A DNA stretch of 64,000 nucleotides, from NCBI RefSeq assembly GCF_000737315.1, contig NZ_JMCB01000001.1:1-64000 (forward strand), given 5' to 3'. The notes under the pieces were generated by a model. It made no database searches and was not told the DNA's origin. It saw only the letters and a program-made list of their open reading frames with translations. This document shows positions 37,600 through 59,680 of the stretch, piece by piece. Source of the stretch: Hyalangium minutum (GTDB taxonomy: Bacteria; Myxococcota; Myxococcia; Myxococcales; Myxococcaceae). The translations under genes and the position numbers were made by a program. Positions within the stretch are counted from its first letter, which is position 1. Every line of letters starts with the position of its first letter.

Positions 37600-37650
37600 A
37601 TTATCGGTTCTGGGCAGAGGGAGTTTCCTGGAATTTTCCGGATCATTTCC
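37600..37650 (-). promoter_or_regulatory. sigma28-type promoter GAAA-N15-ACCGATAA with upstream GGAAA repeats
   Basis: Sense strand ggaaatgatccggaaaattccaggaaactccctctgcccagaaccgataat. Confidence 0.75.
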
Positions 37651-37739
37651 AGGCATTGAAGCGTCCCCTCCCCTGCCTGGCCTACCCCCTGCCACTCATG
37701 AACTGCCGCAGGGCCCTACCTGAACTAGGATGGGGGGAC

Positions 37740-38351
37740 ATGGACCTCTCCCAGGCGAAGGACATCTTCCAGCGGCTCTACCAGGACCTGTCGGGTTACG
37801 AGACGGCCCAGCGGGAGAAGGAGCGGTTGGGACGGGGGGATCAGTCCACCACCTATGGAGAGATCCTCCCCGAGAGCTTCGTGGAGCTGATGGCTGCGGC
37901 CTCCCCCACCGAGGGTGACGTGTTCATTGATCTGGGCTCCGGCACGGGCAAGGCGACCTTCATGGCGGCCCTCAGCTTTCCGCTCAGCAAGTCCATGGGG
38001 GTGGAGCTGCTCCCTGGGCTGGGGGATCTGGCGCGCGAGCGGCTGGCCGTCTACGACTCCGAGTTCCGTCCCCACCTGCCCGAGCAGCACCAGCGCCAGC
38101 GCATCGAGTTCATCGACGGAGACCTGACGGAGCAGGATCTCTCGGGCGTGGACATCGTCTTCGCGCACGCCACCTGCTTCCCGCCGGAGCTGATCGCCCA
38201 GCTGGGCAAGAAGCTCGAGGAACTCAAGCCGGGGGCCCGGGTCATTGTCGCGGGGAACACGCTCAACACGCCGGCCCTCAAGTTCCTCGCCATGAAGATC
38301 ATGAGGGCGGATTGGGGCACGGCCCTCACCGCGATATACCAGCGCACTTGA
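37740..38351 (+). CDS. DOT1-like class I SAM-dependent methyltransferase
   Basis: TYGE, FIDLGSGTGK, AAL...GVEL, DIVFAHATCF, LKPGARVI, DWG...IY: the DOT1 motif order. Confidence 0.75.
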   Translation: MDLSQAKDIFQRLYQDLSGYETAQREKERLGRGDQSTTYGEILPESFVELMAAASPTEGDVFIDLGSGTGKATFMAALSFPLSKSMGVELLPGLGDLARERLAVYDSEFRPHLPEQHQRQRIEFIDGDLTEQDLSGVDIVFAHATCFPPELIAQLGKKLEELKPGARVIVAGNTLNTPALKFLAMKIMRADWGTALTAIYQRT

Positions 38352-38395
38352 CCTCAACCCACCGCCACACCGAGTGGCCACCCAGGAGAGAGCCC

Positions 38396-38968
38396 ATGCG
38401 AAGCGCTTCCCTGTCCCGTCTGCTGACCGCCGCCTGTACGGTGGCGATGCTCGGCGCCTGCAACGGTAACTCTGGAGGTACGGGAGGTCCGGGAGGCGAC
38501 GGGAATCCCAACACCAACACGCCCAAGTCGCCCCCGCCCCAGGCGCTCCAGGGCCAGTGGCTCAACGGCACCATCTCTCCTCTGTGGTTCTGGGATGAGA
38601 ACTCGCAGATGGTGCAGAACGGCGGCGGCACGGCCGCGTACTTCGTCTTCAAGCCCGACGGCAGCTACGAGGAGTTCCTCTATGCCAGCTTCACCAGCGG
38701 CGGCTCCTGCCGCTACCTGAGCTGGAGCTCCACGGAGGGCACGGCCACCTTCGAGGACGGCACCTTCCACATCTACCCGACCAAGGGGCGCTCGAAGTAC
38801 TCGGACTGCACCCACGGCAGCGACTTCGACAAGTCGCTCAGCGCGGATGAGCTGAAGAAGGCCCAGAAAGTCTACTACTGGAAGTTCCAGGCGCAGGCGG
38901 ACGGCACGTCGCAGCTGATGATGGGGCCCAACGAGACGAGCCTGAGCGTCTTCCAGAAGGCGCCGTAG
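38396..38968 (+). CDS. Hypothetical lipoprotein (beta-rich, lipocalin-like)
   Basis: Lipobox MLGAC; LQGQW; RBS aggag. Confidence 0.75.
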   Translation: MRSASLSRLLTAACTVAMLGACNGNSGGTGGPGGDGNPNTNTPKSPPPQALQGQWLNGTISPLWFWDENSQMVQNGGGTAAYFVFKPDGSYEEFLYASFTSGGSCRYLSWSSTEGTATFEDGTFHIYPTKGRSKYSDCTHGSDFDKSLSADELKKAQKVYYWKFQAQADGTSQLMMGPNETSLSVFQKAP

Positions 38969-39018
38969 CCGCGGTGCTCCAGGGTTGAGCACCGCGGCCA
39001 CATGCGCGCGGTGCTCCC

Positions 39019-39522
39019 CTACTCCTCGAGGGCCTCGTCGGCCTTCTTCTGCAGCATGGCCAGGGTGGCGCGGGCGCGCTTGGTGGTGTCGCGCTTGGCC
39101 TCCGGGTCCAGCTTCAGGGCAGCGAGGATGTCCTTGAGGGCATCCTCGAGCTTGCCCTCTTGCAGGTACAGCTCGCTGCGGCCCACCAGCGCATCCACGT
39201 TGGCGATGTTGAGCCGCAGGGAGGTGGTGTACTCCTCCAAGGCCTCGGGGAGCTGCTTGAGCTGGTGGTACGCGAACGCCAGATTCACGTGGAAGACGCT
39301 GTCATAGGGCGAGGCGGCCACCAGCCCCAGGAAGATGTCGCGCGCCTTCTCCAGATCGCCCCGCTTGAGCATGTTGTTGCCCATGGTCGCGATCTCATAC
39401 AGCTGCTTCTGCGAGAGCCCCAGGTACTGCGCGGGGGTGATGTCTCCGGCGACGAGCATCTCGCCGAGCTCCTCCTTGCTGGGAGCCTTGGCGCTGCCGG
39501 GCTTCTGCGGCGTGTCACTCAT
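39019..39522 (-). CDS. SycD/LcrH-like TPR chaperone
   Basis: LGLSQKQLYEIATMG, FHVNLAFAY, ALVGRSELYL. Confidence 0.8.
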   Translation of the reverse strand: MSDTPQKPGSAKAPSKEELGEMLVAGDITPAQYLGLSQKQLYEIATMGNNMLKRGDLEKARDIFLGLVAASPYDSVFHVNLAFAYHQLKQLPEALEEYTTSLRLNIANVDALVGRSELYLQEGKLEDALKDILAALKLDPEAKRDTTKRARATLAMLQKKADEALEE

Positions 39523-39610
39523 GGTTCACCTGGACAAAAAGGCGGGAGGAAGGCGCAGTGGGTTGCGCTCTCCTCCCGCCCGGGAATGAGATGGATTCAG
39601 CCTAGCTCAA

Positions 39611-40720
39611 TTACGCCGTGAAGGTGTTGCGGAACGGCTGCACGGCCTTGCTGAGGTGATCCAGGCCGCGGAACAGGTGCAGCATGCGGCCGATGGAGTC
39701 GAAGTCCTTGCCGAGGCGCTCCTGGCGGCGGTTCAGCCAGCTGCCGGGCCCGGGGCGCGCGGTCAGGCCGCCGTCCTGCTCGTGGCGGCGCGACAGCTGC
39801 TCGGCCAGCTTGGACAGGCCCTTGAACACATCCGACAGGCCCTTGAACACGTCGCGCATCTGCTTCAGCAGCGCGTCGGCGCCCTGCTGCGCGCCCGACG
39901 GCTGGGTGGTCGGGGTGCCCGGAGCCAGATCCTTGCCCAGCTTGAAGGACTCGCCGCCGTTGTTGCTGCCGACGATCTCCTTGCCCGTGAAGGACCAGTC
40001 ATCGGTCTCCTTGCCCATCACGAACACGTCCTTGCCACCGAAGTCGTTGACGTGCTGGAAGCCGTCGTGGGTGACCTGGCCGGTCTTGCCCTTGCCCTTG
40101 TCGATGTCCGTCACCTGCACGCGGTCGTTGCCGGAGATGATGTCCAGGCCGCCGGTCACCGTCATGCCGTTGCCGTAGGGCTTGGTGGTGACGTTGATAC
40201 GGGTGCCGTCGCCCAGCACGAAGGTGCTGTCCTTCTTGAAGTCCCACTTGCCGCCGTCGCCCTCGGCCACGTGCGGGTCGCCCCAGATCTTCGTCTCCTT
40301 GCCGTCCGGACCGGAGATCTTCCAGTCGAACTGGCCGAGCTGCTCGATCTTGTAGCCGCCGGGGGTGGTCACCACGCCGTTGGAGCTCGTCTGCAGGCTG
40401 CCCTGGGGGTGCGAGCCCTGCGAGGGGTTCGGGGTCTCAGGACCCACCGCCATCTTCCACAGGTCGTCCAGCGAGCGGGGGCCCGTGGAGGACGGAGGAA
40501 CGAAGCCGGTGTTGCCGCCGGCCGCAGTGCCCGGCGAGGTGGCGCCGGGGGGAACGAAGCCGGTGTTGCCCGTGGCCGCGGTGCTCGGGGCCTGCGCGGA
40601 GGCGGCCTTGATCAGCTGCGCCTCGAGCTTGTTGAGCTTGCCCTCGAGGGTGCTCAGCTGGGAGCTGAGGGTGTTGAGAGGATTGGCTCCGATACCCACA
40701 GGCTTCGACGTGATCGACAT
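39611..40720 (-). CDS. DUF1521-like domain protein (T3SS-associated)
   Basis: TKIWGDPHV...WDFKKDSTFVLGDGTRINVTTKP core; low-complexity N-terminus; helical C-terminus. Confidence 0.75.
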   Translation of the reverse strand: MSITSKPVGIGANPLNTLSSQLSTLEGKLNKLEAQLIKAASAQAPSTAATGNTGFVPPGATSPGTAAGGNTGFVPPSSTGPRSLDDLWKMAVGPETPNPSQGSHPQGSLQTSSNGVVTTPGGYKIEQLGQFDWKISGPDGKETKIWGDPHVAEGDGGKWDFKKDSTFVLGDGTRINVTTKPYGNGMTVTGGLDIISGNDRVQVTDIDKGKGKTGQVTHDGFQHVNDFGGKDVFVMGKETDDWSFTGKEIVGSNNGGESFKLGKDLAPGTPTTQPSGAQQGADALLKQMRDVFKGLSDVFKGLSKLAEQLSRRHEQDGGLTARPGPGSWLNRRQERLGKDFDSIGRMLHLFRGLDHLSKAVQPFRNTFTA

Positions 40721-40803: not shown

Positions 40804-40858
40804 AGTATCGGCCCATCCGCTTCAGAGTTTCGTGGCGATTTTCACCAACATTATCGGT
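40804..40858 (-). promoter_or_regulatory. sigma28-type promoter GAAA-N15-GCCGATAC upstream of the DUF1521 gene
   Basis: Sense strand gaaactctgaagcggatgggccgatact; an additional ACCGATAAT further upstream. Confidence 0.65.
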
Positions 40859-41026: not shown

Positions 41027-41254
41027 TCACACCGCCAGGTTCTGGATGACGCTCTTGCTCATCTCGTGCAGCGCCTTCATCATCGTCGTCGCCAGCTGCA
41101 CCATCTCCTGCATCCGCTGCATCTCAGCCTGAACCTTCAGAAGGTTCTTCTGCTCCGCGGGGATGTTCTGGTTGTCGATCCACGAGTTCATCGTGCCGAC
41201 GTTGCTGTTGATGGTGCCAGAGAAGTTGTTGAAAACGCCGCCGAGGCTGGACAT
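41027..41254 (-). CDS. 75-aa needle-subunit-like protein, copy 2 (QAE allele)
   Basis: Identical to copy 1 except one S-to-A change; RBS aaggag. Confidence 0.85.
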   Translation of the reverse strand: MSSLGGVFNNFSGTINSNVGTMNSWIDNQNIPAEQKNLLKVQAEMQRMQEMVQLATTMMKALHEMSKSVIQNLAV

Positions 41255-41314: not shown

Positions 41315-41365
41315 ATTATCGGTTCTGGGCAGAGGGAGTTTCCTGGAATTTTCCGGATCATTTCC
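41315..41365 (-). promoter_or_regulatory. sigma28-type promoter of copy 2
   Basis: GAAA-N15-ACCGATAA, same as the copy 1 promoter. Confidence 0.75.
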
Positions 41366-41516: not shown

Positions 41517-41744
41517 TCACACCGCCAGGTTCTGGATGACGCTCTTGCTCATCTCGTGCAGCGCCTTCATCATCGTCGTCGCCAGCTGCACCATCTCCTG
41601 CATCCGCTGCATCTCGGACTGAACCTTCAGAAGGTTCTTCTGCTCCGCGGGGATGTTCTGGTTGTCGATCCACGAGTTCATCGTGCCGACGTTGCTGTTG
41701 ATGGTGCCAGAGAAGTTGTTGAAAACGCCGCCGAGGCTGGACAT
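41517..41744 (-). CDS. 75-aa needle-subunit-like protein, copy 3
   Basis: Same protein as copy 1; RBS caggag. Confidence 0.85.
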   Translation of the reverse strand: MSSLGGVFNNFSGTINSNVGTMNSWIDNQNIPAEQKNLLKVQSEMQRMQEMVQLATTMMKALHEMSKSVIQNLAV

Positions 41745-41805: not shown

Positions 41806-41857
41806 ATTATCGGGCCAGCCCTGCCGGAGTTTCCTGCGACTTTTCCGGATCATTTCC
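41806..41857 (-). promoter_or_regulatory. sigma28-type promoter of copy 3
   Basis: GAAA-ctccggcagggctgg-CCCGATAA. Confidence 0.75.
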
Positions 41858-42006: not shown

Positions 42007-42234
42007 TCACACCGCCAGGTTCTGGATGACGCTCTTGCTCATCTCGTGCAGCGCCTTCATCATCGTCGTCGCCAGCTGCACCATCTCCTGCATCCGCTGC
42101 ATCTCAGCCTGAACCTTCAGAAGGTTCTTCTGCTCCGCGGGGATGTTCTGGTTGTCGATCCACGAGTTCATCGTGCCGACGTTGCTGTTGATGGTGCCAG
42201 AGAAGTTGTTGAAAACACCGCCGAGGCTGGACAT
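42007..42234 (-). CDS. 75-aa needle-subunit-like protein, copy 4 (QAE allele)
   Basis: Same protein as copy 2. Confidence 0.85.
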   Translation of the reverse strand: MSSLGGVFNNFSGTINSNVGTMNSWIDNQNIPAEQKNLLKVQAEMQRMQEMVQLATTMMKALHEMSKSVIQNLAV

Positions 42235-42296: not shown

Positions 42297-42347
42297 ATTC
42301 TCGTGCCCACTCAGGAAAAGTTTCCTGGGGACTTTCTGGATCATTTT
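42297..42347 (-). promoter_or_regulatory. Degenerate sigma28-type promoter of copy 4
   Basis: GAAA-N15-CACGAGAA. Confidence 0.55.
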
Positions 42348-42461: not shown

Positions 42462-42692
42462 TTACACCGACAGGTTCTGGATGGTGCTCTTGCTCATCTC
42501 GTGCAGCGCCTTCATCAGCGTGGTGGCCAGCTGGGTCATCTCCTGCATCCGCTGCATCTCGGACTGAACCTTCAGCAGGTTCTTCTGCTCCGCCGGGATG
42601 TTCTGGTTGTCAATCCACGAGTTCATCGTGTTGACGTTGCTGTTGATGGTGCCCTGGAACTGGTTGAAGACGCCCTGCAGTGCCTGCGACAT
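42462..42692 (-). CDS. 76-aa divergent needle-subunit-like paralog, copy 5
   Basis: MSQALQGVFNQFQGTINSNVNT...MSKSTIQNLSV. Confidence 0.85.
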   Translation of the reverse strand: MSQALQGVFNQFQGTINSNVNTMNSWIDNQNIPAEQKNLLKVQSEMQRMQEMTQLATTLMKALHEMSKSTIQNLSV

Positions 42693-42751: not shown

Positions 42752-42802
42752 ATTATCGGAGTCACCACCCCCGAGTTGCTTGGGGATTTTCGGAATCATT
42801 TC
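42752..42802 (-). promoter_or_regulatory. sigma28-type promoter of copy 5
   Basis: GCAA-N15-TCCGATAA. Confidence 0.7.
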
Positions 42803-42939
42803 GCCGCCAGTGCGAGCTCCGGAGCCGGTGGCGCGGAGGCCTGGAGGCCCTCGAGGCCCAAAACGAAACCGGCCCCGCGGAAGGACCTGAGGTCCTCGCG
42901 AGGCCGGCTCCGAACTGCTCTGTAGCGCCTACCCGGCTA

Positions 42940-43167
42940 TCACACCGCCAGGTTCTGGATGACGCTCTTGCTCATCTCGTGCAGCGCCTTCATCATCGTC
43001 GTCGCCAGCTGCACCATCTCCTGCATCCGCTGCATCTCGGACTGAACCTTCAGAAGGTTCTTCTGCTCCGCAGGGATGTTCTGGTTGTCGATCCACGAGT
43101 TCATCGTGCCGACGTTGCTGTTGATGGTGCCAGAGAAGTTGTTGAAAACGCCGCCGAGGCTGGACAT
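42940..43167 (-). CDS. 75-aa needle-subunit-like protein, copy 6
   Basis: Same protein as copies 1 and 3. Confidence 0.85.
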   Translation of the reverse strand: MSSLGGVFNNFSGTINSNVGTMNSWIDNQNIPAEQKNLLKVQSEMQRMQEMVQLATTMMKALHEMSKSVIQNLAV

Positions 43168-43229: not shown

Positions 43230-43281
43230 ATTATCGGACCCACACCGCCGGAGTTTCCTCCGGTTTTCCAGGATCATTTCC
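43230..43281 (-). promoter_or_regulatory. sigma28-type promoter of copy 6
   Basis: GAAA-N15-TCCGATAA. Confidence 0.75.
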
Positions 43282-43305: not shown

Positions 43306-43941
43306 CTAGCCCTTCAGCTTGCCGATGGAGGGGTTCTTCATCCAGGTCTTGAAGGACTCGAGCTGCTGCTGCTCGGACTTGGGCTCCTGGGCAGCCGGGG
43401 CCTTGGGGGGCGCGGCCGTCTCCGGGTTGAGCGTCATCTTGCTGGGCTTGGAGCCACCCCCCTCAAAACCATCCTGCGCCTTCTTGGCGCCAGGGGCCAC
43501 GGGAGCCGCAGGGGCCGCAGGGGCCGCGACGCCGCCGGCCACGTTCGGAACCTGGACGCCCTCGAGGAGCGACGGGCCCATGATCTTCTCGGGGATCTTC
43601 ACGCCCTCGGGCAGCTGCATCTGGCCGGTGAAGCCGAAGGCCACCAGACGCTTCTGCATGTACTCCACGCACTGCATGATGATGGCCGGGGGCGGCAGGA
43701 CGGGATCCTTCATGAAGCGCATGAAGGCGTCCTTCACGTCCTGGTAGATCTGCATGTCGAACGGCGAGCCCGGGCGCGTGTGCAGCATCAGCTCGTGGAA
43801 CTTGCGCAGCAGGGGCTGCGCGGTGCCGGTGGCCGCCTTGGCCTGCTTCTCGACCTCGGGAATCAGCCGCTCACGCTCTGCCGCCAGCTCGGGCGGCTCG
43901 GGGGGAAACTGCGGGGCATTGGGGTTCTTCGCGTTCGACAT
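43306..43941 (-). CDS. T3SS-cluster hypothetical protein
   Basis: 211-aa ORF with RBS ggag; helical core and Pro/Ala-rich linker. Confidence 0.75.
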   Translation of the reverse strand: MSNAKNPNAPQFPPEPPELAAERERLIPEVEKQAKAATGTAQPLLRKFHELMLHTRPGSPFDMQIYQDVKDAFMRFMKDPVLPPPAIIMQCVEYMQKRLVAFGFTGQMQLPEGVKIPEKIMGPSLLEGVQVPNVAGGVAAPAAPAAPVAPGAKKAQDGFEGGGSKPSKMTLNPETAAPPKAPAAQEPKSEQQQLESFKTWMKNPSIGKLKG

Positions 43942-44078
43942 GAGGCGGGCTCCTCCCGGGGTAGGGGTGCGCTAAATCTACACGATTGCCCCATGCTAAC
44001 AGCAAAGGGGATTCCCCGATCAAGCTTACGGCTGGGAGTTTACGCGTCTTTGCCCTGCCCCGGCCCTACCGGAGAGGC

Positions 44079-44555
44079 TCAGCGGCGACCCGTGAGCGAG
44101 GAAATCATCGCATTGGCCTTCCGAGTCACCGGGTCATCCTCCGCAGCCAGCGAGGCGGCGCGGCGCAGATCCTCGATGGCCTGCGACTTCTGGCCCATGG
44201 TGAGCTTCACCTCGGCGCGGCCCACGTAGGCCTGGGCATCGTCCGAGGCCAGCTTGATGGCCACGTCATAGGCGGCCAGCGCGCCCTGGGCGTTGCCCGC
44301 GGCCAGCTCCACCACCCCGAGCGCCTTGGCGAAGTACGGATCCGTGGGGTTCACCGCGTAGAGCCCCTGGAAGAGCGTCCGCGCCTCGTTCACCCGGCCC
44401 TGGTGGAAGAAGAAGTAGGCCGTCTTGGCGATGGCGTAGAGCTCATCGTCTGAGTAGCCGCGCACGTCGCGCAGGGTCGCCTTGCCGTCCGCCCACTTCT
44501 GCAGGGCCGCGACGAGCTTCGCCTCTTCCTGGGGGCTGTTGGGGTCCGCAGCCAT
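44079..44555 (-). CDS. SycD/LcrH family class II chaperone
   Basis: GYSDDELYAIAKTAYFFF..G, YFAKALGVVE, AYVGRAEV. Confidence 0.85.
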   Translation of the reverse strand: MAADPNSPQEEAKLVAALQKWADGKATLRDVRGYSDDELYAIAKTAYFFFHQGRVNEARTLFQGLYAVNPTDPYFAKALGVVELAAGNAQGALAAYDVAIKLASDDAQAYVGRAEVKLTMGQKSQAIEDLRRAASLAAEDDPVTRKANAMISSLTGRR

Positions 44556-44559
44556 GATG

Positions 44560-45036
44560 CTAGTAGCCCTCGTCCTTCTGCTCCTCGCGGATGCGGCGCA
44601 TGATCTCCTGCACCTCGGAGTTCACCTGGCCCACCAGCGTCAGCATCTGCGACTCGCGCTGGAGCAGGGCCTTGAGCCGCTCCATGCGATCCGGCGGCGC
44701 GTTGATGCGCGACAGGCCACGCTCCATGAGCCGGCGCTGATCATTCTCCCCACGCTCGGCCACGCTCTCCAGCTGGGGCCGGTCCGAGAAGCCCTCGAGC
44801 GGCGCGTCATTCTGACGAGGATTGGCCGGGGTGGGCAGCCGCAGCTCCTCGGAGGAGTGCGCCGGACCGATGAAGTCCAGCAGCGCCGCCGAGGCAAGCG
44901 CCGGGTTCTTCGGGTTGCCGGTCTTCTTGGTGTTCTTGCGGTTGAGCTGCGTGCGATCGACAAGCCGCTCACGGACGCTGCGGGGACCACCCCAGGGCCA
45001 CAGCGGCGCAGGGGGTTGATTGTTGATCTTCGCCAT
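44560..45036 (-). CDS. T3SS-cluster hypothetical protein
   Basis: 158-aa ORF tightly spaced between neighbours. Confidence 0.75.
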   Translation of the reverse strand: MAKINNQPPAPLWPWGGPRSVRERLVDRTQLNRKNTKKTGNPKNPALASAALLDFIGPAHSSEELRLPTPANPRQNDAPLEGFSDRPQLESVAERGENDQRRLMERGLSRINAPPDRMERLKALLQRESQMLTLVGQVNSEVQEIMRRIREEQKDEGY

Positions 45037-45080
45037 GGTTGTGCAACCTCACTCCAGAACAGGGCCGTTCGTCCAGTCCC

Positions 45081-45365
45081 CTACTTCTTGGCGCCGCTCG
45101 CCTGCTGCTCCTGCTGCAGGGCGTAAACGAAGTTCAGCACCTCGGCCACCGCGTCATACAGCTCCTCGGGGACTTCCTGGCCCACGTCGACGCGGTAGAG
45201 CGCATTGGCCAGGGGGAGATTCTTCATGATGGGGATGTTGTACTGCTTGGCAATCTCGCGGATTTTCTCCGCCTTGAGGCGCATCCCCTTGGCCACGACC
45301 CGAGGCGCGCCGTCCTTCTCCTTGTCGTACTTCAGCGCGATCGCGATCTCCGTCTCGTCGTTCAT
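45081..45365 (-). CDS. Stand-alone FlhB/SctU C-terminal domain protein
   Basis: [20 protein letters not shown]...IPEELY-like [13 protein letters not shown]. Confidence 0.9.
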
Positions 45366-45398
45366 GGCTGCCCTGGATGATACCCCGGCCGGGCCCCG

Positions 45399-46460: not shown

Positions 46461-46475
46461 GGCGGGCGCCGGGTG

Positions 46476-47554: not shown

Positions 47555-47564
47555 GGCGTTCCTC

Positions 47565-48401: not shown

Positions 48402-48412
48402 GAGAGCAATCT

Positions 48413-51455: not shown

Positions 51456-51485
51456 CGCGGGACACCTACAAAGGGAGGAGAGAGG

Positions 51486-51974: not shown

Positions 51975-52009
51975 GTGGCCCCCATCCTAACCCGGAAAAA
52001 CCGGTTTCG

Positions 52010-53317
52010 TCAGTCCTGGAAGAGGCCGATGAGCTTCTCGACGGTCTCCTCGAAGGGCGAGTTCGAGTGGGTGTCCTGCTTGAGGAAGTCGATGATCGCG
52101 TCGTACTTGTCGATGGCGTAGTCCGTCCGGGGGTCCGTGCCGTACTGGTAGGCGCCCAGGAGGATGAGGTCGCGCTGCTTCTCGTAGGTCGCGAGCGTCT
52201 CGCGCAGCTTGCCGGCCGCCTTCTTGTGATCCTTGGAGACGATGCCGCTCATCACACGGGAGAGGCTGGCCAGCACGTCCATGGCGGGCCACTGGTTGCG
52301 CTCGCCCAGGGCACGGTTGAGGATGAAGTGGCCGTCGAGAATACCGCGGACTTCGTCGGCGATGGGCTCTTCCATGTCACCGCCGGCCACGAGGCAGGTG
52401 TAGATGGCAGTGCACTTGCCCTTGTCCGAGTTCCCCGTGCGCTCGAGGATGCGCGGCAGCATGGAGAACACGCTGGGCGGGTAGCCCTGGCGGGCCGGGG
52501 GCTCGCCGATGGCCAGGCCGATCTCACGCTGGGCACGGGCGAGACGCGTCACCGTGTCGAGCATGAAGAGCACGTTGCCGCCGCGCTCTCGGAAGTACTC
52601 GGCGATGGCCGTGGCCACGTAGGCGGCGCGCAGACGCACCAGGCTGGGTTGGTCGGAGGTGGCGCACACCAGCACGGCGCGCTTCATGCCCTCCTCGCCC
52701 ATGGCGTCCTCGATGAACTCGCGGACCTCGCGGCCACGCTCGCCGATCAGCGCCACGACGCTCAGGTCCGCTTGGGTGTTTCGGGCGATCTGGCCCATCA
52801 GCGTGGACTTACCGACGCCGGAACCGGCGAAGAGGCCCACGCGCTGGCCCTCGCCCACCGTGAGCAGCCCGTCAATGCAGCGCACGCCCAAAGGCAGCGG
52901 CCGTTCAATTCTCTGGCGCTTGAACGGGTCCGGGCAGTCCCGGTCCACGCTCCAGTCAATCATGCCGTCCGGCATCGGCTTGCCGTCGATGGGCTCGCCG
53001 GTGCCGCCGAGCACGCGGCCCAGCAGTTGATCGCCGCACTTGATGGTGAGCGGCTTGCCGGTGGGAATCACCTCGCTGTCCGGGCCGATGCCCGACAGCT
53101 CGCCCAGGGGCATGAGCATCACCTCGTCGCCCTGGAAGCCCACCACCTCGGCCTTCACCTTGTTGGTGCGGGCCTTGATGTAGACGACCTCGCCCACGCG
53201 GACGTTGGGCACGCTGGCCTTGATGACCAGGCCCGTCAGCTCCGTCACGCGGCCTCGCACGCGGATGAGCGAGGCCTCCTTCAGCAGGGAGTAGTAGTGC
53301 GAGAGGTCGATCGCCAT
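52010..53317 (-). CDS. sctN: T3SS ATPase SctN (FliI family)
   Basis: GLFAGSGVGKST, LIGERGREV, GYPPSVF, ILDGHFIL. Confidence 0.97.
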   Translation of the reverse strand: MAIDLSHYYSLLKEASLIRVRGRVTELTGLVIKASVPNVRVGEVVYIKARTNKVKAEVVGFQGDEVMLMPLGELSGIGPDSEVIPTGKPLTIKCGDQLLGRVLGGTGEPIDGKPMPDGMIDWSVDRDCPDPFKRQRIERPLPLGVRCIDGLLTVGEGQRVGLFAGSGVGKSTLMGQIARNTQADLSVVALIGERGREVREFIEDAMGEEGMKRAVLVCATSDQPSLVRLRAAYVATAIAEYFRERGGNVLFMLDTVTRLARAQREIGLAIGEPPARQGYPPSVFSMLPRILERTGNSDKGKCTAIYTCLVAGGDMEEPIADEVRGILDGHFILNRALGERNQWPAMDVLASLSRVMSGIVSKDHKKAAGKLRETLATYEKQRDLILLGAYQYGTDPRTDYAIDKYDAIIDFLKQDTHSNSPFEETVEKLIGLFQD

Positions 53318-53321
53318 GGGG

Positions 53322-53999
53322 TTACGCCGGTCCTTCCTTCTTCCCGTTGGGATCGGGCAGCAGCACGTTCTGCAGCATCTCGAACTGCGTGGGCAGCTGC
53401 GCGTCGATGGTGCCGAACTCCGTCTGGACAATGCAGCCCACCGGGGCCACGTCCTGGTCCTCCCGGATGGCCAGGTCCACCGCCCGGCCAATGAGCTCCA
53501 TCAGCTCCGGCTTGCGGGAGCGCAGCACCTGCGCCGTTTTCGGGTGCACCCGCAGGATCATCGAGCGCGCGCTGCGGATCTGCTCGATGGCGGTGGCGCA
53601 CATCTCCATCATCAGCTCGGGCTGCCGCTCGATGTCCCGGCCGATGATCTTCTCGGCAATCTTGCACGCCAGGGCGATGACGTCCTTCTCGTTGCCAGCC
53701 AGCATCTCCCCGGCCTGCATCTTGGCGCGCAGCAGCACCTCGGAGGCCTGGGCAAGCCCCTCCTGGCGGCCCTGCTCGCGGGCCTTGGCGAGCACCTCCT
53801 CACGCTCGCGCTGGGCCTCCGCGAGGATGCGCTCCTTCTCCTTGTTCGCCTCCTCGATAATCCCCTGGGCGGACTGGCGCGCATCGAAGATCTCGGCGTT
53901 CATCACGCCAGCGCGCGTGGGACGCGGTGCCATGGGGCGCTCGGCGGCACCCGCAAGCTCCCCAGACCCGTCACCTTTGATCACCTTGCCGATCGCCAT
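53322..53999 (-). CDS. sctL: T3SS stator SctL (FliH family)
   Basis: AREQGRQEGL (AxxxG motif); GCIVQTEFGTIDA. Confidence 0.9.
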   Translation of the reverse strand: MAIGKVIKGDGSGELAGAAERPMAPRPTRAGVMNAEIFDARQSAQGIIEEANKEKERILAEAQREREEVLAKAREQGRQEGLAQASEVLLRAKMQAGEMLAGNEKDVIALACKIAEKIIGRDIERQPELMMEMCATAIEQIRSARSMILRVHPKTAQVLRSRKPELMELIGRAVDLAIREDQDVAPVGCIVQTEFGTIDAQLPTQFEMLQNVLLPDPNGKKEGPA

Positions 54000-54023
54000 G
54001 GACAGCTCCTTGACGGCTGGATG

Positions 54024-55784
54024 CTAGCGCGATCCCCCGCGAGGTCCACGCCCCGAGTTGCCCCCAGAAGGGGGCCGGGTGGGCCGCTGGCCGCCTGCTC
54101 CCCCGCCGCGTGAGGCCAGGGACGGCCGGGCTGCCGTCTTTCCCGAGAGGACCCGGGGCGGACGCTCCGGTTCGTTTGTAAGTGAACTGCTCACCCCCGT
54201 CCCTCGGCTGCGGACACCCGGCGAGGAAATGACGCGAGAGCCATCCGGGTCCATGGGGGCCGGCGGCCGGTCGGCCATGCGCGGAGGAACGCGAGCGGGA
54301 GGCACTCCGCGCGGATCCCCTTCACGCGGCCGGGAGGGCGCACCCGCCTCGGGCGGAGGCCGGCGAGAGCCCGCACGGGAGTTCTCGACCTCAGGAGGAG
54401 GCTGACGGGAGCCGACGCGAGAGGCCTCTCTTGAGGGCGGAGGGCCCACCCGGGCGCCCCCGGGCTCCGGCGGCACGCCCTGTGAGTCTTTCCGCGGCCC
54501 CACGCGCGCGTTGCGCGAGAGCGCGGGTGGATCGTCGTCGATGGGAGGACCGATGCGAGAGGGCTCGCGCGAGGAGAGCGCTCCGGCTCGGCGAGCAGCG
54601 CGCTCGGCCATGGGATCCCGGCGGACGCTGCTGTCCCCGGAGTTGGCGCCTCCCGTGGGCCCCGCGAATCCCGCGCGCCGGGCCTCGCGCTCGGCCATGG
54701 CATCCCGGCGGGGCGCAGGCGGCGGCTGGACGACGTTGGAGCGCTCCTGGCCTCCAGGGGGCGGACGCGCGGGAGGTGGCTCGCGGCTGGGAGGCGCGCC
54801 ACGCATGGGTGGCGGGTTGAGCGCCGGACGCTGCGGGGTGAGCCGCACAGGGCGCTCGATGAGGCCTCGGGCGGCCAGCCGCTCCAGATCCGCGACGATG
54901 TCGGCACGGCCGCCGTCCGTCACACGAGAGGCGGGCTTGGAGCGCTCGTCGCGAACCCACTTGGCCAGCAGGCTCCCGAAGTCCCCGCGGTGGCGCTCGA
55001 GCATGCGCGCGGCGAACTCCGCGGACTGAGACACACACGCACGAGCCAGGCGCTGGGTGCCCGCGCTGCGGATGGCGCCCGCCAGATTCTTCAGCCCGTC
55101 ATGGACGGCGAGCTGCTCCTTGGCCTCCTCTGAAGGCAGCTTACGTGGGGCGTTGGCCTGGACGGCCTTGGAGGCCAGGGACTTCATGTCCGGCGGAAGG
55201 GCGGCGATGAGCCCCTCGCGCTGCGCATCCTCGAGCCCGGCCATCGCCGGCCCCAGCACGCGCGCGCCGAGCCGATCACACACGGTGAGCAGCTCACGCG
55301 GCTGCAGCATGAGCACATCGGTGAACTTGAAGGCGGCCTGGGAGCCGGAGCTGTGCTTGAGCCGCTCCTCGAGCTTCCAGCGGATGATGTCCAGCACCTG
55401 CGGACGCACCTCGCGGGAGAGCTTCACTGGGCGCTGCGGCAGGTGGGCACGCACGGCCTCGGCCAGCACGGAGGGCAAGGCCCGGAGCACCACCTCGGCC
55501 AGCGCGCCGCGCTCCTTCTGGATGAGGGCAGCCAGCTTCTCCGGCTCGGCGTTCCAGAGCTGGCCGCGCCGGTCCTTCACCAGCTTCTTGATCTCCTGCA
55601 CGAGAAACGGAATCCGCTTCTCACGCGGGATGTGCATGATCTCCTGCGCGCGGTGGAGCAACAGCTCCCCGTCCTCCGGCGCGAGGTGCTCGAGCGCGGC
55701 GACGCCCTCCTGACCGCCGAAGGTGATGGCGGTCAGCAGCAGCATCGTCTGGCGCTTGTTGAGCGAGGTGAAGAATTGATCCAA
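54024..55784 (-). CDS. SctK/FliG-like helical protein with long Pro/Arg-rich tail
   Basis: Position between sctJ and sctL; helical N-terminal part; disordered C-terminal part. Confidence 0.55.
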   Translation of the reverse strand: MDQFFTSLNKRQTMLLLTAITFGGQEGVAALEHLAPEDGELLLHRAQEIMHIPREKRIPFLVQEIKKLVKDRRGQLWNAEPEKLAALIQKERGALAEVVLRALPSVLAEAVRAHLPQRPVKLSREVRPQVLDIIRWKLEERLKHSSGSQAAFKFTDVLMLQPRELLTVCDRLGARVLGPAMAGLEDAQREGLIAALPPDMKSLASKAVQANAPRKLPSEEAKEQLAVHDGLKNLAGAIRSAGTQRLARACVSQSAEFAARMLERHRGDFGSLLAKWVRDERSKPASRVTDGGRADIVADLERLAARGLIERPVRLTPQRPALNPPPMRGAPPSREPPPARPPPGGQERSNVVQPPPAPRRDAMAEREARRAGFAGPTGGANSGDSSVRRDPMAERAARRAGALSSREPSRIGPPIDDDPPALSRNARVGPRKDSQGVPPEPGGARVGPPPSREASRVGSRQPPPEVENSRAGSRRPPPEAGAPSRPREGDPRGVPPARVPPRMADRPPAPMDPDGSRVISSPGVRSRGTGVSSSLTNEPERPPRVLSGKTAARPSLASRGGGAGGQRPTRPPSGGNSGRGPRGGSR

Positions 55785-55857
55785 ACCGGTTCACCTCGAG
55801 GGACGCAGGTCCCGGGGTTCGAAGCAGAGAGCCTCAGAGCCTAACGCTGCCCGCGCC

Positions 55858-56643
55858 TCAGCGGCGGGCCGGACGCGCGTCGCCCGAGCCTCCGCGCATG
55901 AGTACCCAGGCCGAGAGGCCAATCATGGCCAGGACGAAGATGGAGACAATGCCCACGAGCACGCGGAACTGGCCAGCGCTGGCCGCCGTCATGCGCAGGC
56001 CGAACACGTCCTGCAGCCGGCTCTCCGGGTTGGTCTCCGCCGAGGGAGGCAGGCCCGGGGTGAGCAGCACCGTCACGCGGTCCGGCTTGAGCTCCTGCAC
56101 CGCGGAGCTGACGAAGGTCTGCACATCCTTCTCCGTCACCGGCGGCTTGCCCTCGAGGCTTGGGCGGTAGCGGATCATCACCGAGGCCGACGGCATCGGC
56201 TTGTTCTCCGGCTGCGTCAGGTCATTCGTCTCCGGGATGTTGACGATGACGTTGGACTCCAGCACGCCGTCGACCTTGTTCAGGGCGTTGGAGATCTCGC
56301 CAGCAATGGCCTTGAGCATCATCGCGCGCTCTTCTGCGGCGGTGGGCACCATGCTGCCCTTGGCGAAGTGGTTGAAGCCCTTCTCCATGGGGCGCGGCAG
56401 CGAGTTGGCGCGCAGCAGCTCCGCGGCCTGAGCGGCGTCGGACTTCGGCACCTGGATGGTGAAGCGCATGTCCGTGCCTTCACCCGCCGCGACCTTGGTG
56501 GCGTTGATGCCGTTCTTGCTGAGCAGAACGTAGATCTCGTTGGCGTCCTCTTCCGTGAGGCCGTGCTGCAGTTCAATGGAGCAGCCCGTCACGAGGAGCA
56601 GGGCCAACAAGGGAAGGAGGCGGGTGGACGATCGATGAGTCAT
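55858..56643 (-). CDS. sctJ: T3SS inner-membrane ring lipoprotein SctJ
   Basis: Lipobox VTGC; GLTEEDANEI; MVPT..EERA; SASVMIRY; C-terminal TM. Confidence 0.93.
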   Translation of the reverse strand: MTHRSSTRLLPLLALLLVTGCSIELQHGLTEEDANEIYVLLSKNGINATKVAAGEGTDMRFTIQVPKSDAAQAAELLRANSLPRPMEKGFNHFAKGSMVPTAAEERAMMLKAIAGEISNALNKVDGVLESNVIVNIPETNDLTQPENKPMPSASVMIRYRPSLEGKPPVTEKDVQTFVSSAVQELKPDRVTVLLTPGLPPSAETNPESRLQDVFGLRMTAASAGQFRVLVGIVSIFVLAMIGLSAWVLMRGGSGDARPARR

Positions 56644-56704
56644 GTGCGGGGCCTAGCTTAGCGGCGCGGCCTTGCCGTTCCAACATGGGGTCCGGAAAAC
56701 GTGG

Positions 56705-56739
56705 AAGGGCGATCCCCCCACTAAAGAGGGATCGCCCTT
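56705..56739 (-). terminator. Hairpin terminator after sctI
   Basis: aagggcgatccc...gggatcgccctt inverted repeat. Confidence 0.7.
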
Positions 56740-56772
56740 GGAAGCGCTGCCCGGATGAGGGGCAGGCAGCCT

Positions 56773-57324
56773 TTACACCTGGGTCTTGACCACGTCCTTG
56801 AGGCCGCTGGTGGCCTTCTCGACGACCTTCGACGTGAGGTCCAGCTCCTGGGTGTACTTGTACATGGAGGCCTGGAGCGAGAGCAGCTCCGAGTTGGAGA
56901 AGTTCTTCCCGCTCATGCCGGAGTTGATGAGCTTCTCCAGGTTCATCTGGCCCTTCTCCAGCGAGGAGACGACGCTGGAGACCATGGTGTTGGCCTTGCT
57001 CGTCTGCGCCTTCGCGTCCACCGGCTCCGCGGCCTTGGCGGTCAGCTGCTGGCTGTTGGCGCCGTTGACCTTGTTGAGGCCTGCCTTCTCCGTCTTGTTG
57101 ACGTCGTCGACCTTACGCGACGCGTCGACCTGCTGGGCCTTCTGCGTCTGCTGGACCGACTGCGCCTGCTGCACGCCCTGGGCCTGGTCAACGCCCTGAG
57201 ACTTGTTAGCGAGAACCCCGTCGAACTTCGAGGCTCCCTGCTTGTTCACCTGCTGCGCGCCCTGATCCTGCAGCTTCTGCTGCGCGATCTGTGCGGCCGA
57301 GATGCCTGCTGTCGGACCCGCCAT
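56773..57324 (-). CDS. sctI: SctI-like inner rod protein
   Basis: C-terminus ELLSLQASMYKYTQELDLTSKVVEKATSGLKDVVKTQV matches the YscI/HrpB2 pattern; lies upstream of sctJ. Confidence 0.7.
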   Translation of the reverse strand: MAGPTAGISAAQIAQQKLQDQGAQQVNKQGASKFDGVLANKSQGVDQAQGVQQAQSVQQTQKAQQVDASRKVDDVNKTEKAGLNKVNGANSQQLTAKAAEPVDAKAQTSKANTMVSSVVSSLEKGQMNLEKLINSGMSGKNFSNSELLSLQASMYKYTQELDLTSKVVEKATSGLKDVVKTQV

Positions 57325-58039
57325 GTGACTGCCTCCTTGCATCGTCGGAGGAAGCCGGGGCTTCCTCGTCGTCTAAAAGTTCCTTGAGCCGCTCGATGGC
57401 CCGCGCATGAAGCCGCGACGCCCAGCTCTTCGACTGCCCAATCTCCGCGCCCGCCTCTTCCAGCGTCTTCCCGTGGAAGTAGTACCCCTGCAGCAGCTGC
57501 CGCTCCTTCTCCGGGAGCTGATCGATCGCCGCCCTCACCCGCCGCTTCAGCTGCTCCATCTCCAGCCGCTGATCCGCCGGCAGAGACTCATCCACGTACC
57601 CCGACGCGTCCAGCCCTTCCAGGCTGGTGGCCAGCACCATGGCCAGCCCCGTCACCGCGTTGGAGATGTCATTCACATCATCGTCAAATGACCCTCCGCG
57701 GTTGCCTCCGCCCTGCTCGCGGTCCGACAAATTTCCAAGGTAAGCGGCCGCCCGTTCACCCACGAACGCGCCGCGCGCATCCGCGCCCTTCAACACCCCC
57801 ATTTTCCTCAGGCCGTCGAAAATGGCGCCCTTGATGCGGTAGTGGGCAAAGGTGAGGAAATTGGCTCCCACCTTGGGATCAAAGCGATCTGCCGCCTCGA
57901 GCAGACCGATCTGCCCGTAGGCCATCAACTCCTCGATCTCGAGCTGGGCGTTGAACTGCTTGCGGACAGTCGCTGCCAGCGACCGCACGTAAGGGCCGTA
58001 TTTCTCGAGGATCGCCTTCTTGTCGTCGCCGAAGCCCAA
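57206..58039 (-). CDS. FliA/WhiG-like (sigma28-type) RNA polymerase sigma factor
   Basis: Region 2 EELMAYGQIGLLEAADRFDP...YRIKGAIFDGLR; region 4 LPEKERQLLQGYY...TLEEAG...SRLHARA. TTG start inferred; 3' end overlaps the sctI start. Confidence 0.85.
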   Translation of the reverse strand: MGFGDDKKAILEKYGPYVRSLAATVRKQFNAQLEIEELMAYGQIGLLEAADRFDPKVGANFLTFAHYRIKGAIFDGLRKMGVLKGADARGAFVGERAAAYLGNLSDREQGGGNRGGSFDDDVNDISNAVTGLAMVLATSLEGLDASGYVDESLPADQRLEMEQLKRRVRAAIDQLPEKERQLLQGYYFHGKTLEEAGAEIGQSKSWASRLHARAIERLKELLDDEEAPASSDDARRQSHGGSDSRHLGRTDRAAEAAGSGRAAGEQAGSLEVRRGSR

Positions 58040-58046
58040 ACGCCGC

Positions 58047-58448
58047 TCACTCGGCCTTCGACCACAGCCGCTCAAGAACCTGGTTGAGCCGGGGATCCTC
58101 TTGGAGCGCGTCCGCGATCTTGCTGGAGAGCGCGGAGGACTTCATCCGGAGCTTCTCCTTGAGGACCTCAGCGACGAGGTGCTTCGTGGCCTCCTCCTTG
58201 TTCTTGAAGCCGCCGTTCTTGAGCTGCTTGGCGATGGCCATGGCCTGGGAGGAGATGGGATCCGCCGCCCGGGCCTGCTCGACATTGGAAGAGCCCACCA
58301 GCCCGGAGGGCCCCACCAGGGACTCGGCCTTGTCGACCTTGCCCCCGAAACTCGAACCACCCGCGGGAGCCTTGCCGGACGCACCCCTCGCGCCACCCGC
58401 ACGGCCCTTACCACCCCCGCGTCCTACGCCACCGACTGACATCGCCAA
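58047..58448 (-). CDS. Hypothetical protein, possible FlgM-like anti-sigma
   Basis: Gly-rich N-terminus; AIAKQLKNGGFK segment; immediately upstream of the sigma gene. Confidence 0.6.
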   Translation of the reverse strand: MAMSVGGVGRGGGKGRAGGARGASGKAPAGGSSFGGKVDKAESLVGPSGLVGSSNVEQARAADPISSQAMAIAKQLKNGGFKNKEEATKHLVAEVLKEKLRMKSSALSSKIADALQEDPRLNQVLERLWSKAE

Positions 58449-58475
58449 GCCTCCTCAGCTCCAGCGCATTGTGCG

Positions 58476-58910
58476 CTACTTCTTCGGCGGAGGCAGCGCC
58501 CCCGCCTCTTTTGCATCGATGAGGGCACGCGCGAGCCGGGCGCCATCGCCCTCGGGCTCGAGATCCACCGCGGCCTTCAGTTCCTTCAGCGCTTCCGGGA
58601 CCTTGCCCATGAAGAGTAGCGCTTCGCCAGCGTGCGCGCGCGGCAGGGCGGAGTTCGGGGCCAGACGCTGGGCCGCCCGGTAGGCTTGCAGGGCCTTGTC
58701 GTGGCGCCCCTGGGCGAACTCCAGCGCGCCCAGCGCCAGCTGCGGCACCTCGCTCTTGGGCATCAAGGCCACGGCGCCGGTGAAGACGTCCTTCGCCTTG
58801 TCGTACTTGCCCATCTCCAGCCAGATGTAGCCGGCCTCGAGCAGGATCATCGCCTGCTGCTTGCCCACCGGGACGACGCTGCCAGCAATCTCCGACGCAG
58901 ACTCCGCCAT
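58476..58910 (-). CDS. TPR chaperone (SycD- or YscG-like)
   Basis: Three TPRs; next to the long needle-like paralog. Confidence 0.75.
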   Translation of the reverse strand: MAESASEIAGSVVPVGKQQAMILLEAGYIWLEMGKYDKAKDVFTGAVALMPKSEVPQLALGALEFAQGRHDKALQAYRAAQRLAPNSALPRAHAGEALLFMGKVPEALKELKAAVDLEPEGDGARLARALIDAKEAGALPPPKK

Positions 58911-59008
58911 GAAGCGTGCTCTCCTGTGCAAGGGCCCGGAAGGAAGAAGGGGGGCAGTACCGCAGCCCCCCTTCCCACTCGGCGCCCGACCACCAACAGC
59001 TTAGCGGA

Positions 59009-59584
59009 TTAGCGGATGTTGCCGATCGCGTTCTTCGCCGTCTCGTGGCGGGACTTCAGCACGTTGGAGACGGCCTGGTACTTCTGGGACTCCTGCTGCA
59101 TGGCGGACTGGAGCTTCAGCAGGTTCTTCTGCTCCTGGAACATGCCGGCCAGCTCACCGTTGAACTCGGAGCCCGGCGTGCCCGTGTTGCCCGCCAGGTA
59201 GTTCGGGCCGCCCGCGGTGCCGCCGCCGCCCACGCCCGGGATGCCGACGCTGCCGCCGGAGCCCACGGTGGTGTTCACGGAGGGAACGCCCACCGAGCCC
59301 GCGCCCGTGCTGCCCGAGCCCGCGCCCGGCAGAACCGACGTGTACGGAGTGGACGCGCCGCCAGTGGCGCCCGACGCGGTAAGCGTCGTCATCGACGAGA
59401 CCGCCGCCGAGACGATGCCGCCACCGGAGAACATCCCCGTGGCCAGACCCACGCCGCCGGCGACCGCGCCCGCCGCGTTGTTCACGCCCGCCTGAACGCG
59501 AGCACCGAAGCTCGTGTCCGGGGTCTGCCGACCCACCGACAGGTTGGTAGACATCCGAGGACCCATCAATCCATCGACCTTCAT
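59009..59584 (-). CDS. 191-aa Gly-rich protein with needle-subunit-like C-terminus
   Basis: EQKNLLKLQSAMQQESQKYQAVSNVLKSRHETAKNAIGNIR aligns without gaps to the 75-aa proteins. Confidence 0.8.
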   Translation of the reverse strand: MKVDGLMGPRMSTNLSVGRQTPDTSFGARVQAGVNNAAGAVAGGVGLATGMFSGGGIVSAAVSSMTTLTASGATGGASTPYTSVLPGAGSGSTGAGSVGVPSVNTTVGSGGSVGIPGVGGGGTAGGPNYLAGNTGTPGSEFNGELAGMFQEQKNLLKLQSAMQQESQKYQAVSNVLKSRHETAKNAIGNIR

Positions 59585-59652
59585 TTTTTCCTCCAGCGTT
59601 CGGACAACTTCGAAAGGTTCAGAGCCCCGGCCAGCCCGGCGCTCTCATTGTA

Positions 59653-59680
59653 ATTATCGCTGATCACGCGCCTGGGTTGC
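59653..59680 (-). promoter_or_regulatory. sigma28-type promoter GCAA-N15-AGCGATAA
   Basis: Sense strand gcaacccaggcgcgtgatcagcgataat, about 70 bp before the ATG at 59584. Confidence 0.6.

Follow-up and report, generated by a model that had tools for sequence, protein, structure and literature searches.

Probable sigma-28-class promoters precede genes for predicted export substrates in a type III secretion cluster of Hyalangium minutum

The first 64,000 nucleotides (nt) of contig NZ_JMCB01000001.1 of Hyalangium minutum, hereafter the window, encode a type III secretion apparatus together with a sigma factor resembling FliA, the sigma-28 factor of flagellar late genes. Eight sites with the spacing and -10 sequence of sigma-28 promoters lie within this cluster. 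Each precedes a gene for a predicted exported or structural protein: six small genes resembling sctF, the gene of the type III needle subunit, one gene for a DUF1521 protein and one for a protein of 191 amino acids (aa), p191. We are fairly confident that the eight sites are sigma-28 (FliA)-class promoters of predicted exported proteins, most likely read by the cluster's own FliA-like sigma. The sigma-28-type substrate regulon that they delineate is real and probably not previously described.

Results

Eight sites with exact spacing head eight genes

The 64-kb window was scanned with the loose pattern GMAA-N15-NNCGAKAM (G[A/C]AA-N15-NNCGA[T/G]A[A/C]), which gave 10 matches against 0.47 expected and at most 2 in any of 100 shuffles; chance does not account for such a frequency. 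Eight of the ten, all on the minus strand, are the sites that a sequence-only reading of this DNA had singled out, at positions that are real but were each given one base too low. The remaining two (1913 and 13729) do not reach 8 bits when scored with a weight matrix, and we took them for chance occurrences. This matrix, 30 nt long and built from 34 sites of other genomes only, picked exactly the eight sites at a threshold of 8 bits across the 64 kb. Seven score 25-37 bits, compared with 16 bits for the best of 20 shuffled windows; the eighth, at 42298, has a degenerate -10 element, CACGAGAA, and scores 12.0 bits.

The sites and the units that they head lie on the minus strand. The p191 gene is preceded by the site at 59654..59680 (GCAACC-N13-AGCGATAA; 30.0 bits). 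SctF-like genes 6 to 2 are preceded, in this order, by sites at 43231..43257 (33.9 bits), 42753..42779 (27.8 bits), 42298..42324 (the weak one), 41807..41833 (37.4 bits) and 41316..41342, and the DUF1521 gene by the site at 40805..40831 (GAAACT-N13-GCCGATAC; 25.4 bits), which is kept in the related loci L001 and L004. The last site, at 37601..37627 (25.2 bits), belongs to SctF-like gene 1, which is detached from the other copies.

In the window the motif takes the form G(A/C)AAC-N-CCGATAAT. The N15 spacing is exact in 8/8 sites, and a conserved T follows the xCCGATAA block. The -10 element reads xCCGATAA/C in six sites, the exceptions being AGCGATAA (59654) and CACGAGAA (42298), while the -35 element is GAAA at six sites and GCAA at two. 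Spacing and -10 element are those of the sigma-28 consensus TAAA-N15-GCCGATAA. For Pseudomonas aeruginosa the sigma-28 consensus is given as (-36)TCTAAAG(-30) and (-15)GCCGATAA(-8) (PMC12784957); the window sites have AGG where this consensus has TCT, and they do not agree on the leading G of GCCGATAA. An ATG with a Shine-Dalgarno sequence sits 60-84 nt downstream of each of the eight sites. In seven of them the A+T content at about -40 to -60 reaches 50-59%, against a window mean of 33%; a value of 55% is attained by just 0.75% of windows. These A+T-rich stretches consist of phased A-tracts (GGAAATGATCCGGAAAAT) resembling UP elements, and such tracts at seven promoters fit a high output of a major subunit. 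The p191 promoter lacks them (A+T fraction 0.27 upstream).

At every site, the first 20-35 nt past the -10 element, at the start of the 5' untranslated region (UTR), contain a conserved TGTAAG-like stretch followed by a GC-rich stem-loop (for example at 40774-40790 and 59600-59640), which could serve mRNA stabilisation or translation control. Upstream of the p191 promoter, at ~59700-59755 (minus strand), lies a direct repeat, CGCAAGT(A/G)NCCCGCAAGTG, kept in the Hyalangium-like loci L006, L007 and L012; Myxococcus and Archangium loci have another conserved block there, AAGGGCCGGA(A/G)ATAAC. The repeat may be a regulator binding site.

The sequence-only reading had placed the motif before the six small genes, the DUF1521 gene and the p191 gene only, and this restriction held: by weight-matrix scan of the window, no sigma-28-type site precedes the apparatus genes. 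One candidate, upstream of the p211 gene (43942-44078, minus strand), pairs a -35-like GTAAACTCC / TAAACTCC with no CGATAA block at the right spacing and was not counted.

Six of the eight sites precede paralogs, so that the eight are not independent events, and two (37601 and 41316) are identical through a recent duplication. One might accordingly suspect that the repeated motif is a by-product of tandem duplication of one gene with its upstream region and has no selected function. We regard this as highly improbable. Five of the small genes have coding sequences of 97-100% identity. Over the promoter spacers and 5' UTRs the identity drops, one duplicated pair excepted, to 30-69% with both promoter blocks intact, indicating that the blocks are maintained in otherwise diverged DNA. 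Furthermore, the flanks of the DUF1521 and p191 promoters are unrelated to the upstream regions of the needle-type genes, and the motif is kept at orthologs in other genera and before unrelated genes of 123-160 aa. The duplication reading is thus already contradicted by the conservation, matrix, divergence and co-occurrence results. The near-identity of five coding sequences amid diverged flanks hints at gene conversion or at a strong selective pressure on dosage.

Conservation of the motif and co-occurrence with the sigma gene

Related loci, designated by L numbers, retain the motif. In 10/10 loci that contain the start of the p191 ortholog, it stands 69-108 nt ahead of this gene, and across Hyalangium, Archangium, Myxococcus and Pyxidicoccus (SctQ identity 54-89%) orthologous genes carry it with spacers that differ. 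Before SctF-like genes, it was found at three copies each in L007 and L012, at two each in L011 and L018, at one in L014 and at three in L001, two of these having an N14 spacer. Three SctF-like genes of the Pyxidicoccus locus L015 have a variant, CCCATAAT, with a 16-nt spacer (N16). All three of these copies (L015:17884-18165, 20438-20710 and 20971-21243, minus strand) read GAAACTTCC-N-CCCCATAAT, with the G of CGA replaced and the spacer longer by 1 nt.

The motif also precedes DUF1521 genes and unrelated genes of 123-160 aa in L011, L014, L015 and L019. At L011:15920, L014:18010 and L015:17149 it stands before genes for unrelated proteins of 123-153 aa located right after p211; the window contains no gene of this kind. 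Judging by position and size, these proteins probably belong to the MXAN_2455 family.

A matrix derived from the window sites alone detected between 1 and 6 sites in 10/11 loci that carry the sigma gene. L013 carries it as well, and its sites, found by regular expression, fall below the threshold of this matrix. In ten distant loci of T3SS-like (type III secretion system-like) or flagellar kind (~170 kb), the same matrix found no site, and no homolog of the sigma was found in the same DNA. When metagenomes were scanned with GAAACTCC-N12-CCGATAAT, 117 of the 120 matches listed were chance occurrences or coding sequence of unrelated organisms; L097, L112 and L137 were further SctF-like promoters, and no new regulon member appeared among the matches listed.

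A FliA/WhiG-like sigma factor encoded in the cluster

The gene at 57206..58039 (minus strand) occupies the position of MXAN_2437 and encodes a group-3 sigma of 277 aa. Its description as FliA/WhiG-like in the sequence-only reading is borne out by the best matches and not by the curated cutoffs. The best NCBIfam model is FliA_WhiG (TIGR02479; 3e-32, 112.1 bits), and the best matches in the PDB are E. coli FliA (6pmi; 1.3e-19), further FliA chains and WhiG, with RpoS well behind. With the FliA model NF005413 the protein scores 108.5 bits against a cutoff of 201, and the generic sigma-70 superfamily model alone was passed. Orthologs are widespread in Myxococcaceae and Archangiaceae; they bear the JGI name "sigma factor for flagellar operon FliA" and, in one NCBI record, "FliA/WhiG family". 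M. xanthus SigF was considered as the counterpart of the cluster sigma and rejected, since its gene, MXAN_0785, is located elsewhere than in the cluster.

The equivalents of E. coli D81 and R84 and of P. aeruginosa S224 are kept in the cluster sigma. The two E. coli positions were reportedly recognised by Koo et al. in 2009 as promoter-reading residues of FliA. P. aeruginosa Q228, in region sigma-4.2, contacts the -36/-35 positions (PMC12784957); in all 120 closest homologs of the cluster sigma this residue is an Arg, and the matching promoter bases are AGG, not TCT. Likewise, the leading G of GCCGATAA, which is not conserved in the promoters, corresponds to a reading Arg that aligns with Gly in the cluster sigma. 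That the departures of the promoters are mirrored in residues of the sigma is suggestive of co-variation, and is not proof that this sigma, as we suppose, may read the motif.

Several observations weigh against our assignment. The -35 element begins with G or GC, not T; the -10 core GATAAT also makes up 5/6 of the sigma-70 hexamer; and "CGA" is not universal, given the Pyxidicoccus variant CCCATAAT. On the side of the protein, the score of 112.1 bits is below the FliA_WhiG cutoff of 189.6, and the Arg that reads the extended -10 element (E. coli R91, equivalent to P. aeruginosa R97) is the one replaced by Gly, with a K/R one residue earlier. In addition, a sigma encoded outside the 64-kb window could conceivably be the reader of the sites.

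The last point is part of an alternative in which a different holoenzyme reads the motif, either the housekeeping sigma at GATAAT assisted by an activator at GAAAC or another alternative sigma, the cluster sigma being devoted to other genes. The match of GATAAT to five of the six bases of TATAAT, the retention of ATAAT without CGA in Pyxidicoccus and the scores of the cluster sigma below the family cutoffs would all agree with this. Yet GAAACT matches TTGACA at only 2/6 positions, the spacing is that of sigma-28 promoters, and almost every site, whatever the genus, retains CCGA. Motif and sigma gene occur together and were both missing from the DNA covered of the distant loci, and M. xanthus SigF is encoded outside the cluster. 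We therefore judge a different holoenzyme to be unlikely and favor the cluster's own FliA-like sigma.

Products of the motif-headed units

The six SctF-like genes map at 37312..37539 (gene 1), 41027..41254 (gene 2), 41517..41744 (gene 3), 42007..42234 (gene 4), 42462..42692 (gene 5; 76 aa, a divergent copy with 87-88% nt identity) and 42940..43167 (gene 6; 75 aa). Single sequences match PF09392, the type III needle family, with E=5e-6 (gene 6) to 3e-4 and 21-27 bits, below the gathering score of 29.4; with TIGR02105 they reach 17.7 bits, below the cutoff of 41.7. A profile of nine diverse members matches the 43-residue chain 7y6c_F (E=1.5e-5); we take this chain for a piece of a needle, whereas its depositors labelled it as the co-chaperone. 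MxiH aligns with the profile over its full length, but with E=1.3. The AlphaFold2 (AF2) model of the protein is a helical hairpin (H2-27 and H33-74) with a pLDDT of 92; a Foldseek search with it returned generic helical hairpins, a Shigella rod/needle chain ranking 11 with E=1.9, and did not discriminate.

The p191 gene (59009..59584; position of MXAN_2434) encodes a protein rich in Gly, Ser and Ala. The last 40 aa of p191 and the C-terminal helix of the SctF-like proteins are paralogous. BLASTP gives 45% identity and E=6e-11 against the 75-aa protein, and the needle hidden Markov model gives E=3.9e-11.

The DUF1521 protein (39611..40720; 369 aa, position of MXAN_2458) matches PF07481 with E=4.8e-13 and 49.9 bits, above the cutoff of 23.6. 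The DUF1521 domain is known from rhizobial type III effectors, among which NopE1 typifies metal-induced autocleavage. The sequence IWGDPHVAEG contains GDPH, which we take to be the autocleavage motif of NopE1. The N-terminus of the protein has Gly/Pro-rich repeats, with GNTGFVPP present twice.

Hairpins follow most of these genes. A terminator hairpin with its core at 42871..42887 (extended fold z = -4.8) recurs at 37232-37248, 40958-40974, 41448-41464 and 41938-41954, so that a conserved GC-rich hairpin lies 3' of five of the six small genes; none was detected after the copy at 42462-42692. A strong hairpin with a U5 tract at 39541..39580 (z = -4.1; 0/200 shuffles) terminates the DUF1521 unit, and a 12-bp GC-rich hairpin with no clear U-tract, a leaky terminator or an attenuator, lies at 58944..58976 past the p191 gene. 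In three units a gene for a small, chaperone-like tetratricopeptide repeat (TPR) protein comes directly past the hairpin: TPR151 (58476..58931; Pfam TPR match, syntenic in all loci) after p191, TPR167 (39019-39522) after DUF1521 and TPR155 (36608-37075) after SctF-like gene 1. The fourth of the small TPR genes, all of them minus-strand and 151-167 aa in length, is at 44079-44555. From their arrangement, the three units look like substrate-chaperone pairs with an attenuator between the partners. Adjacent to SctF-like gene 1 is a gene for a DOT1-like methyltransferase (37656-38351, plus strand), a neighbourhood also found in the metagenome loci L001 and L002.

The sequence-only reading had taken the motif to mark extracellular substrates. 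Its restriction to genes of predicted exported or structural proteins agrees with this view, and the products may well be secreted. The extracellular location is the less secure part of the claim, no secretin having been found among the larger reading frames of the window scanned against Pfam.

The secretion apparatus and its M. xanthus counterpart

According to Pfam matches, the minus-strand block 43306-59584, together with the genes for SctV (32604-34811) and an FHA/SctD-like protein (31359-32483), encodes a type III apparatus. The apparatus genes at 43306..57342 (minus strand), which have no sigma-28-type site, encode SctI, SctJ, a FliG_C-like protein, SctL, SctN, an SctO-like protein, SctP with a FliK-type domain, SctQ of the FliM+FliN type, FliO, SctR, SctS, SctT, SctU, FlhB-C, p158, TPR158 and p211. 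The FliG_C match scores 27.2 bits, over a gathering score of 23.3, and is in a 586-aa protein (54024-55784, minus strand) that has a long tail rich in Pro and Arg; according to Abby and Rocha, Myxo systems lack FliG. FlhB-C is a stand-alone FlhB/SctU C-terminal domain protein of 94 aa (45081-45365, minus strand) encoded right after full-length SctU (45399-46460, minus strand), whose cleavage motif is NPDH, not NPTH.

The same gene order is found in loci from Hyalangium (SctQ 89% identity), Archangium, Myxococcus, Pyxidicoccus and Corallococcus. Moreover, when the genes are numbered from p191 onwards, the published M. xanthus designations are recovered (sctJ = MXAN_2439, sctN = MXAN_2442, sctQ = MXAN_2445, DUF1521 = MXAN_2458), which identifies the cluster as the ortholog of the "needleless" T3SS* of M. 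xanthus (mxan_2434-2464). By the same count, p191 corresponds to MXAN_2434, p133 (see below) to MXAN_2436 and the sigma to MXAN_2437, orthology here being drawn from gene order only.

T3SS* has been published as lacking a needle homolog, with no mention of a sigma factor (PMC3459982, PMC10433427, PMC10849154, PMC12075869). It is needed for prey lysis, and its substrates and the exit route of the proteins are stated to be unknown (PMC10433427, PMC12075869). The two systems share the gene order, several TPR (LcrH-like) chaperones and, as far as the larger reading frames of the window go, the lack of a secretin. Unlike the published descriptions of T3SS*, the Hyalangium window has six SctF-like genes, a FliA-like sigma and the promoter motif; an SctF-like gene is also carried by the Myxococcus sp. 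locus L014. A search of the literature on Myxococcus in conjunction with SctF, FliA, sigma-28 or the locus tags returned nothing relevant; Thiery 2022, on T3SS*, may mention a sigma.

A candidate anti-sigma factor and the question of hierarchy

The sequence-only reading had further proposed that the early/late hierarchy of the flagellum was kept in this system. The broader interpretation gains from the sigma-28 architecture, the restriction to genes of predicted exported or structural proteins, the conservation across genera and the co-occurrence with the sigma; the hierarchy, which we can only infer, fares less well, no homolog of FlgM having been detected by sequence or fold. The candidate for this role is p133 (58047..58442, minus strand), a highly conserved protein whose gene precedes that of the sigma by 7 nt wherever a locus extends over this region. 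The protein combines a disordered, Gly-rich stretch of 60 N-terminal residues with a C-terminal half made up of four helices (AF2 model, pLDDT 55). An ortholog with 92% identity bears a UniRef FlgM-C-terminal label, and hhalign places SKIADAL of p133 onto GKIADAL of E. coli FlgM. By position, layout and label, p133 is thus a candidate anti-sigma factor, an analog of FlgM that may gate the sigma.

Taken at full strength, these features would describe a flagellar-type checkpoint in which an anti-sigma, possibly p133, is exported once the apparatus is complete and the eight units are true late genes. The invariant position of p133, its FlgM-like layout of disorder followed by helices, the label of its ortholog and the SKIADAL alignment point in this direction, as does the presence of switch components, namely the FliK-like SctP and SctU with NPDH. 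Against it, hhalign aligned 12 columns with a probability of 3%, and nothing significant linked p133 to FlgM in Pfam (with E values as high as 10 admitted), a profile search of the PDB, the hhalign comparison with E. coli FlgM or a Foldseek search with the low-scoring model. With so weak an alignment and the other searches empty, the FlgM-type checkpoint stays hypothetical, and we hold it to be possible but rather doubtful.

The promoters of the apparatus operons and of the sigma gene itself bear on the same question. Ahead of the apparatus operons, scans of two cluster parts (36000-46000 and 54000-62000) turned up no sigma-70-like site, and a scan of all 64 kb for sigma-54-like sites was likewise negative. 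The hairpin past the p191 gene lies ~12 nt from the annotated start of TPR151 (~33 nt if ATG 58910 is used), with no recognisable promoter between, and a hairpin of other sequence occupies the same place in L014 and L018. Since the p191 promoter is directly upstream of TPR151-p133-sigma and the intervening hairpin lacks a U-tract, the sigma may partly drive itself. From this layout, TPR151, p133, sigma and SctI may owe their transcription to read-through that starts at the p191 promoter, or else to a promoter within the p191 gene. Read-through into the sigma operon would amount to positive feedback and not to a clean early/late split.

Expression of the M. xanthus counterparts

In M. xanthus at 2 h of predation, the induced T3SS* genes include MXAN_2434 (log2 +1.16), MXAN_2435 (+0.69), MXAN_2438 (+0.67), MXAN_2455 (+0.74) and MXAN_2458 (+2.03), MXAN_2434 and MXAN_2458 being induced most (PMC9548883). 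Counts for MXAN_2455 (125 aa) are ~1500, compared with ~100 for sctQ and ~330 for MXAN_2439 (PMC9548883). The position of MXAN_2455 corresponds to that of the motif-preceded 125-aa gene in Pyxidicoccus. With orthology taken from gene order only, these data fit strong, separately controlled substrate units.

They could also be viewed as the signature of a dedicated pathway activator, the sigma responding in the manner of HrpL to a signal from outside, for instance contact with prey or starvation, with no assembly checkpoint involved. The positional equivalents MXAN_2434 and MXAN_2458 rise within 2 h of prey contact, T3SS* foci arise only at prey contact sites (PMC10433427), and the conserved direct repeat upstream of the p191 promoter, with CGCAAGT present twice, suggests input from an extra regulator. 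But a checkpoint would account for these data just as well, the analysis linked the sigma to no sensor, and the counts of MXAN_2455 are already high in the first columns of the count table. A cue-driven activator is a tentative alternative to the checkpoint.

Discussion

We propose that RNA polymerase carrying the cluster sigma (57206-58039) would transcribe eight short units, each headed by one promoter, encoding a predicted type III export substrate and typically closed by a hairpin. The products would be six SctF-like polymer-forming subunits, p191, which ends in the same putative polymerisation helix, and the DUF1521 protein. The activity of the sigma might be gated by the adjacent p133 acting like FlgM, and read-through of the p191 hairpin into TPR151-p133-sigma could provide positive feedback.

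The closest parallel is the flagellar class 3/4 regulon of E. coli, Salmonella and P. aeruginosa, governed by FliA and FlgM. Both have the bipartite promoter spacing, the -10 element GCCGATAA and a FliA-like sigma, and in both the sigma serves genes for polymer subunits and other late proteins that are exported; these exist in several copies, each with its own promoter and terminator. Partial self-control of the sigma gene may be another shared trait, as E. coli fliA also has a FliA-dependent promoter. There are differences, however, the Hyalangium system being non-flagellar. No flagellin, hook, rod or Mot domains were matched in the window proteins scanned against Pfam, and the targets are SctF-like, not flagellin. 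In place of TCTAAAG, the -35 element has (A)GGAAAC or GCAAC; the sites do not share the first G of GCCGATAA; the sigma does not reach the FliA cutoffs; and FlgM is not detectable.

Sigma factors are associated with type III secretion in other bacteria as well. HrpL, the extracytoplasmic function (ECF, group 4) sigma of Hrp1 systems, acts at the hrp box, which marks secreted substrates, and also drives apparatus operons; genome scans for this box have been used to find effectors. As in Hyalangium, the sigma is encoded in the type III cluster and a bipartite promoter marks secreted substrates, whereas the Hyalangium sigma is of group 3 and FliA-like and the apparatus genes are devoid of the motif. 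In Bordetella, the ECF sigma BtrS and its secreted anti-sigma BtrA couple injectisome secretion to transcription. The logic of a secreted anti-sigma is the one proposed here for p133, which is likened to BtrA by logic and not by homology; BtrS, unlike the Hyalangium factor, is an ECF sigma. FliA-family sigmas also serve programmes other than motility: the WhiG-RsiG system of Streptomyces, whose WhiG is among the best PDB matches of the cluster sigma, and Chlamydia, where sigma-28 drives late genes. Those regulons comprise sporulation or late developmental genes and not substrates of an adjacent type III system, and no RsiG-like protein was recognised here.

While sigma-28 regulons as such are known, the novelty here is a regulon of this class in a system whose substrates and supposed lack of a needle are open issues. 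Our findings offer candidate substrates, namely the SctF-like proteins, p191/MXAN_2434, DUF1521/MXAN_2458 and the proteins of 123-160 aa such as MXAN_2455, and a candidate regulator, MXAN_2437, together with p133/MXAN_2436. The motif also makes it easy to search the rest of the genome for further substrates. Going further, we put forward as a tentative idea that T3SS* may not be needleless and that it could form an SctF-type filament, periplasmic or passing through some other channel, with substrates switched on by a retained sigma-28/FlgM-like circuit; such a system would be an intermediate between flagellum and injectisome, and its motif might serve as a genome-wide tag of the T3SS* effectors that lyse prey. 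If this were true, the earliest-branching non-flagellar system would have kept both a filament-type subunit and the sigma of flagellar late genes, which would bear on the origin of injectisomes from flagella.

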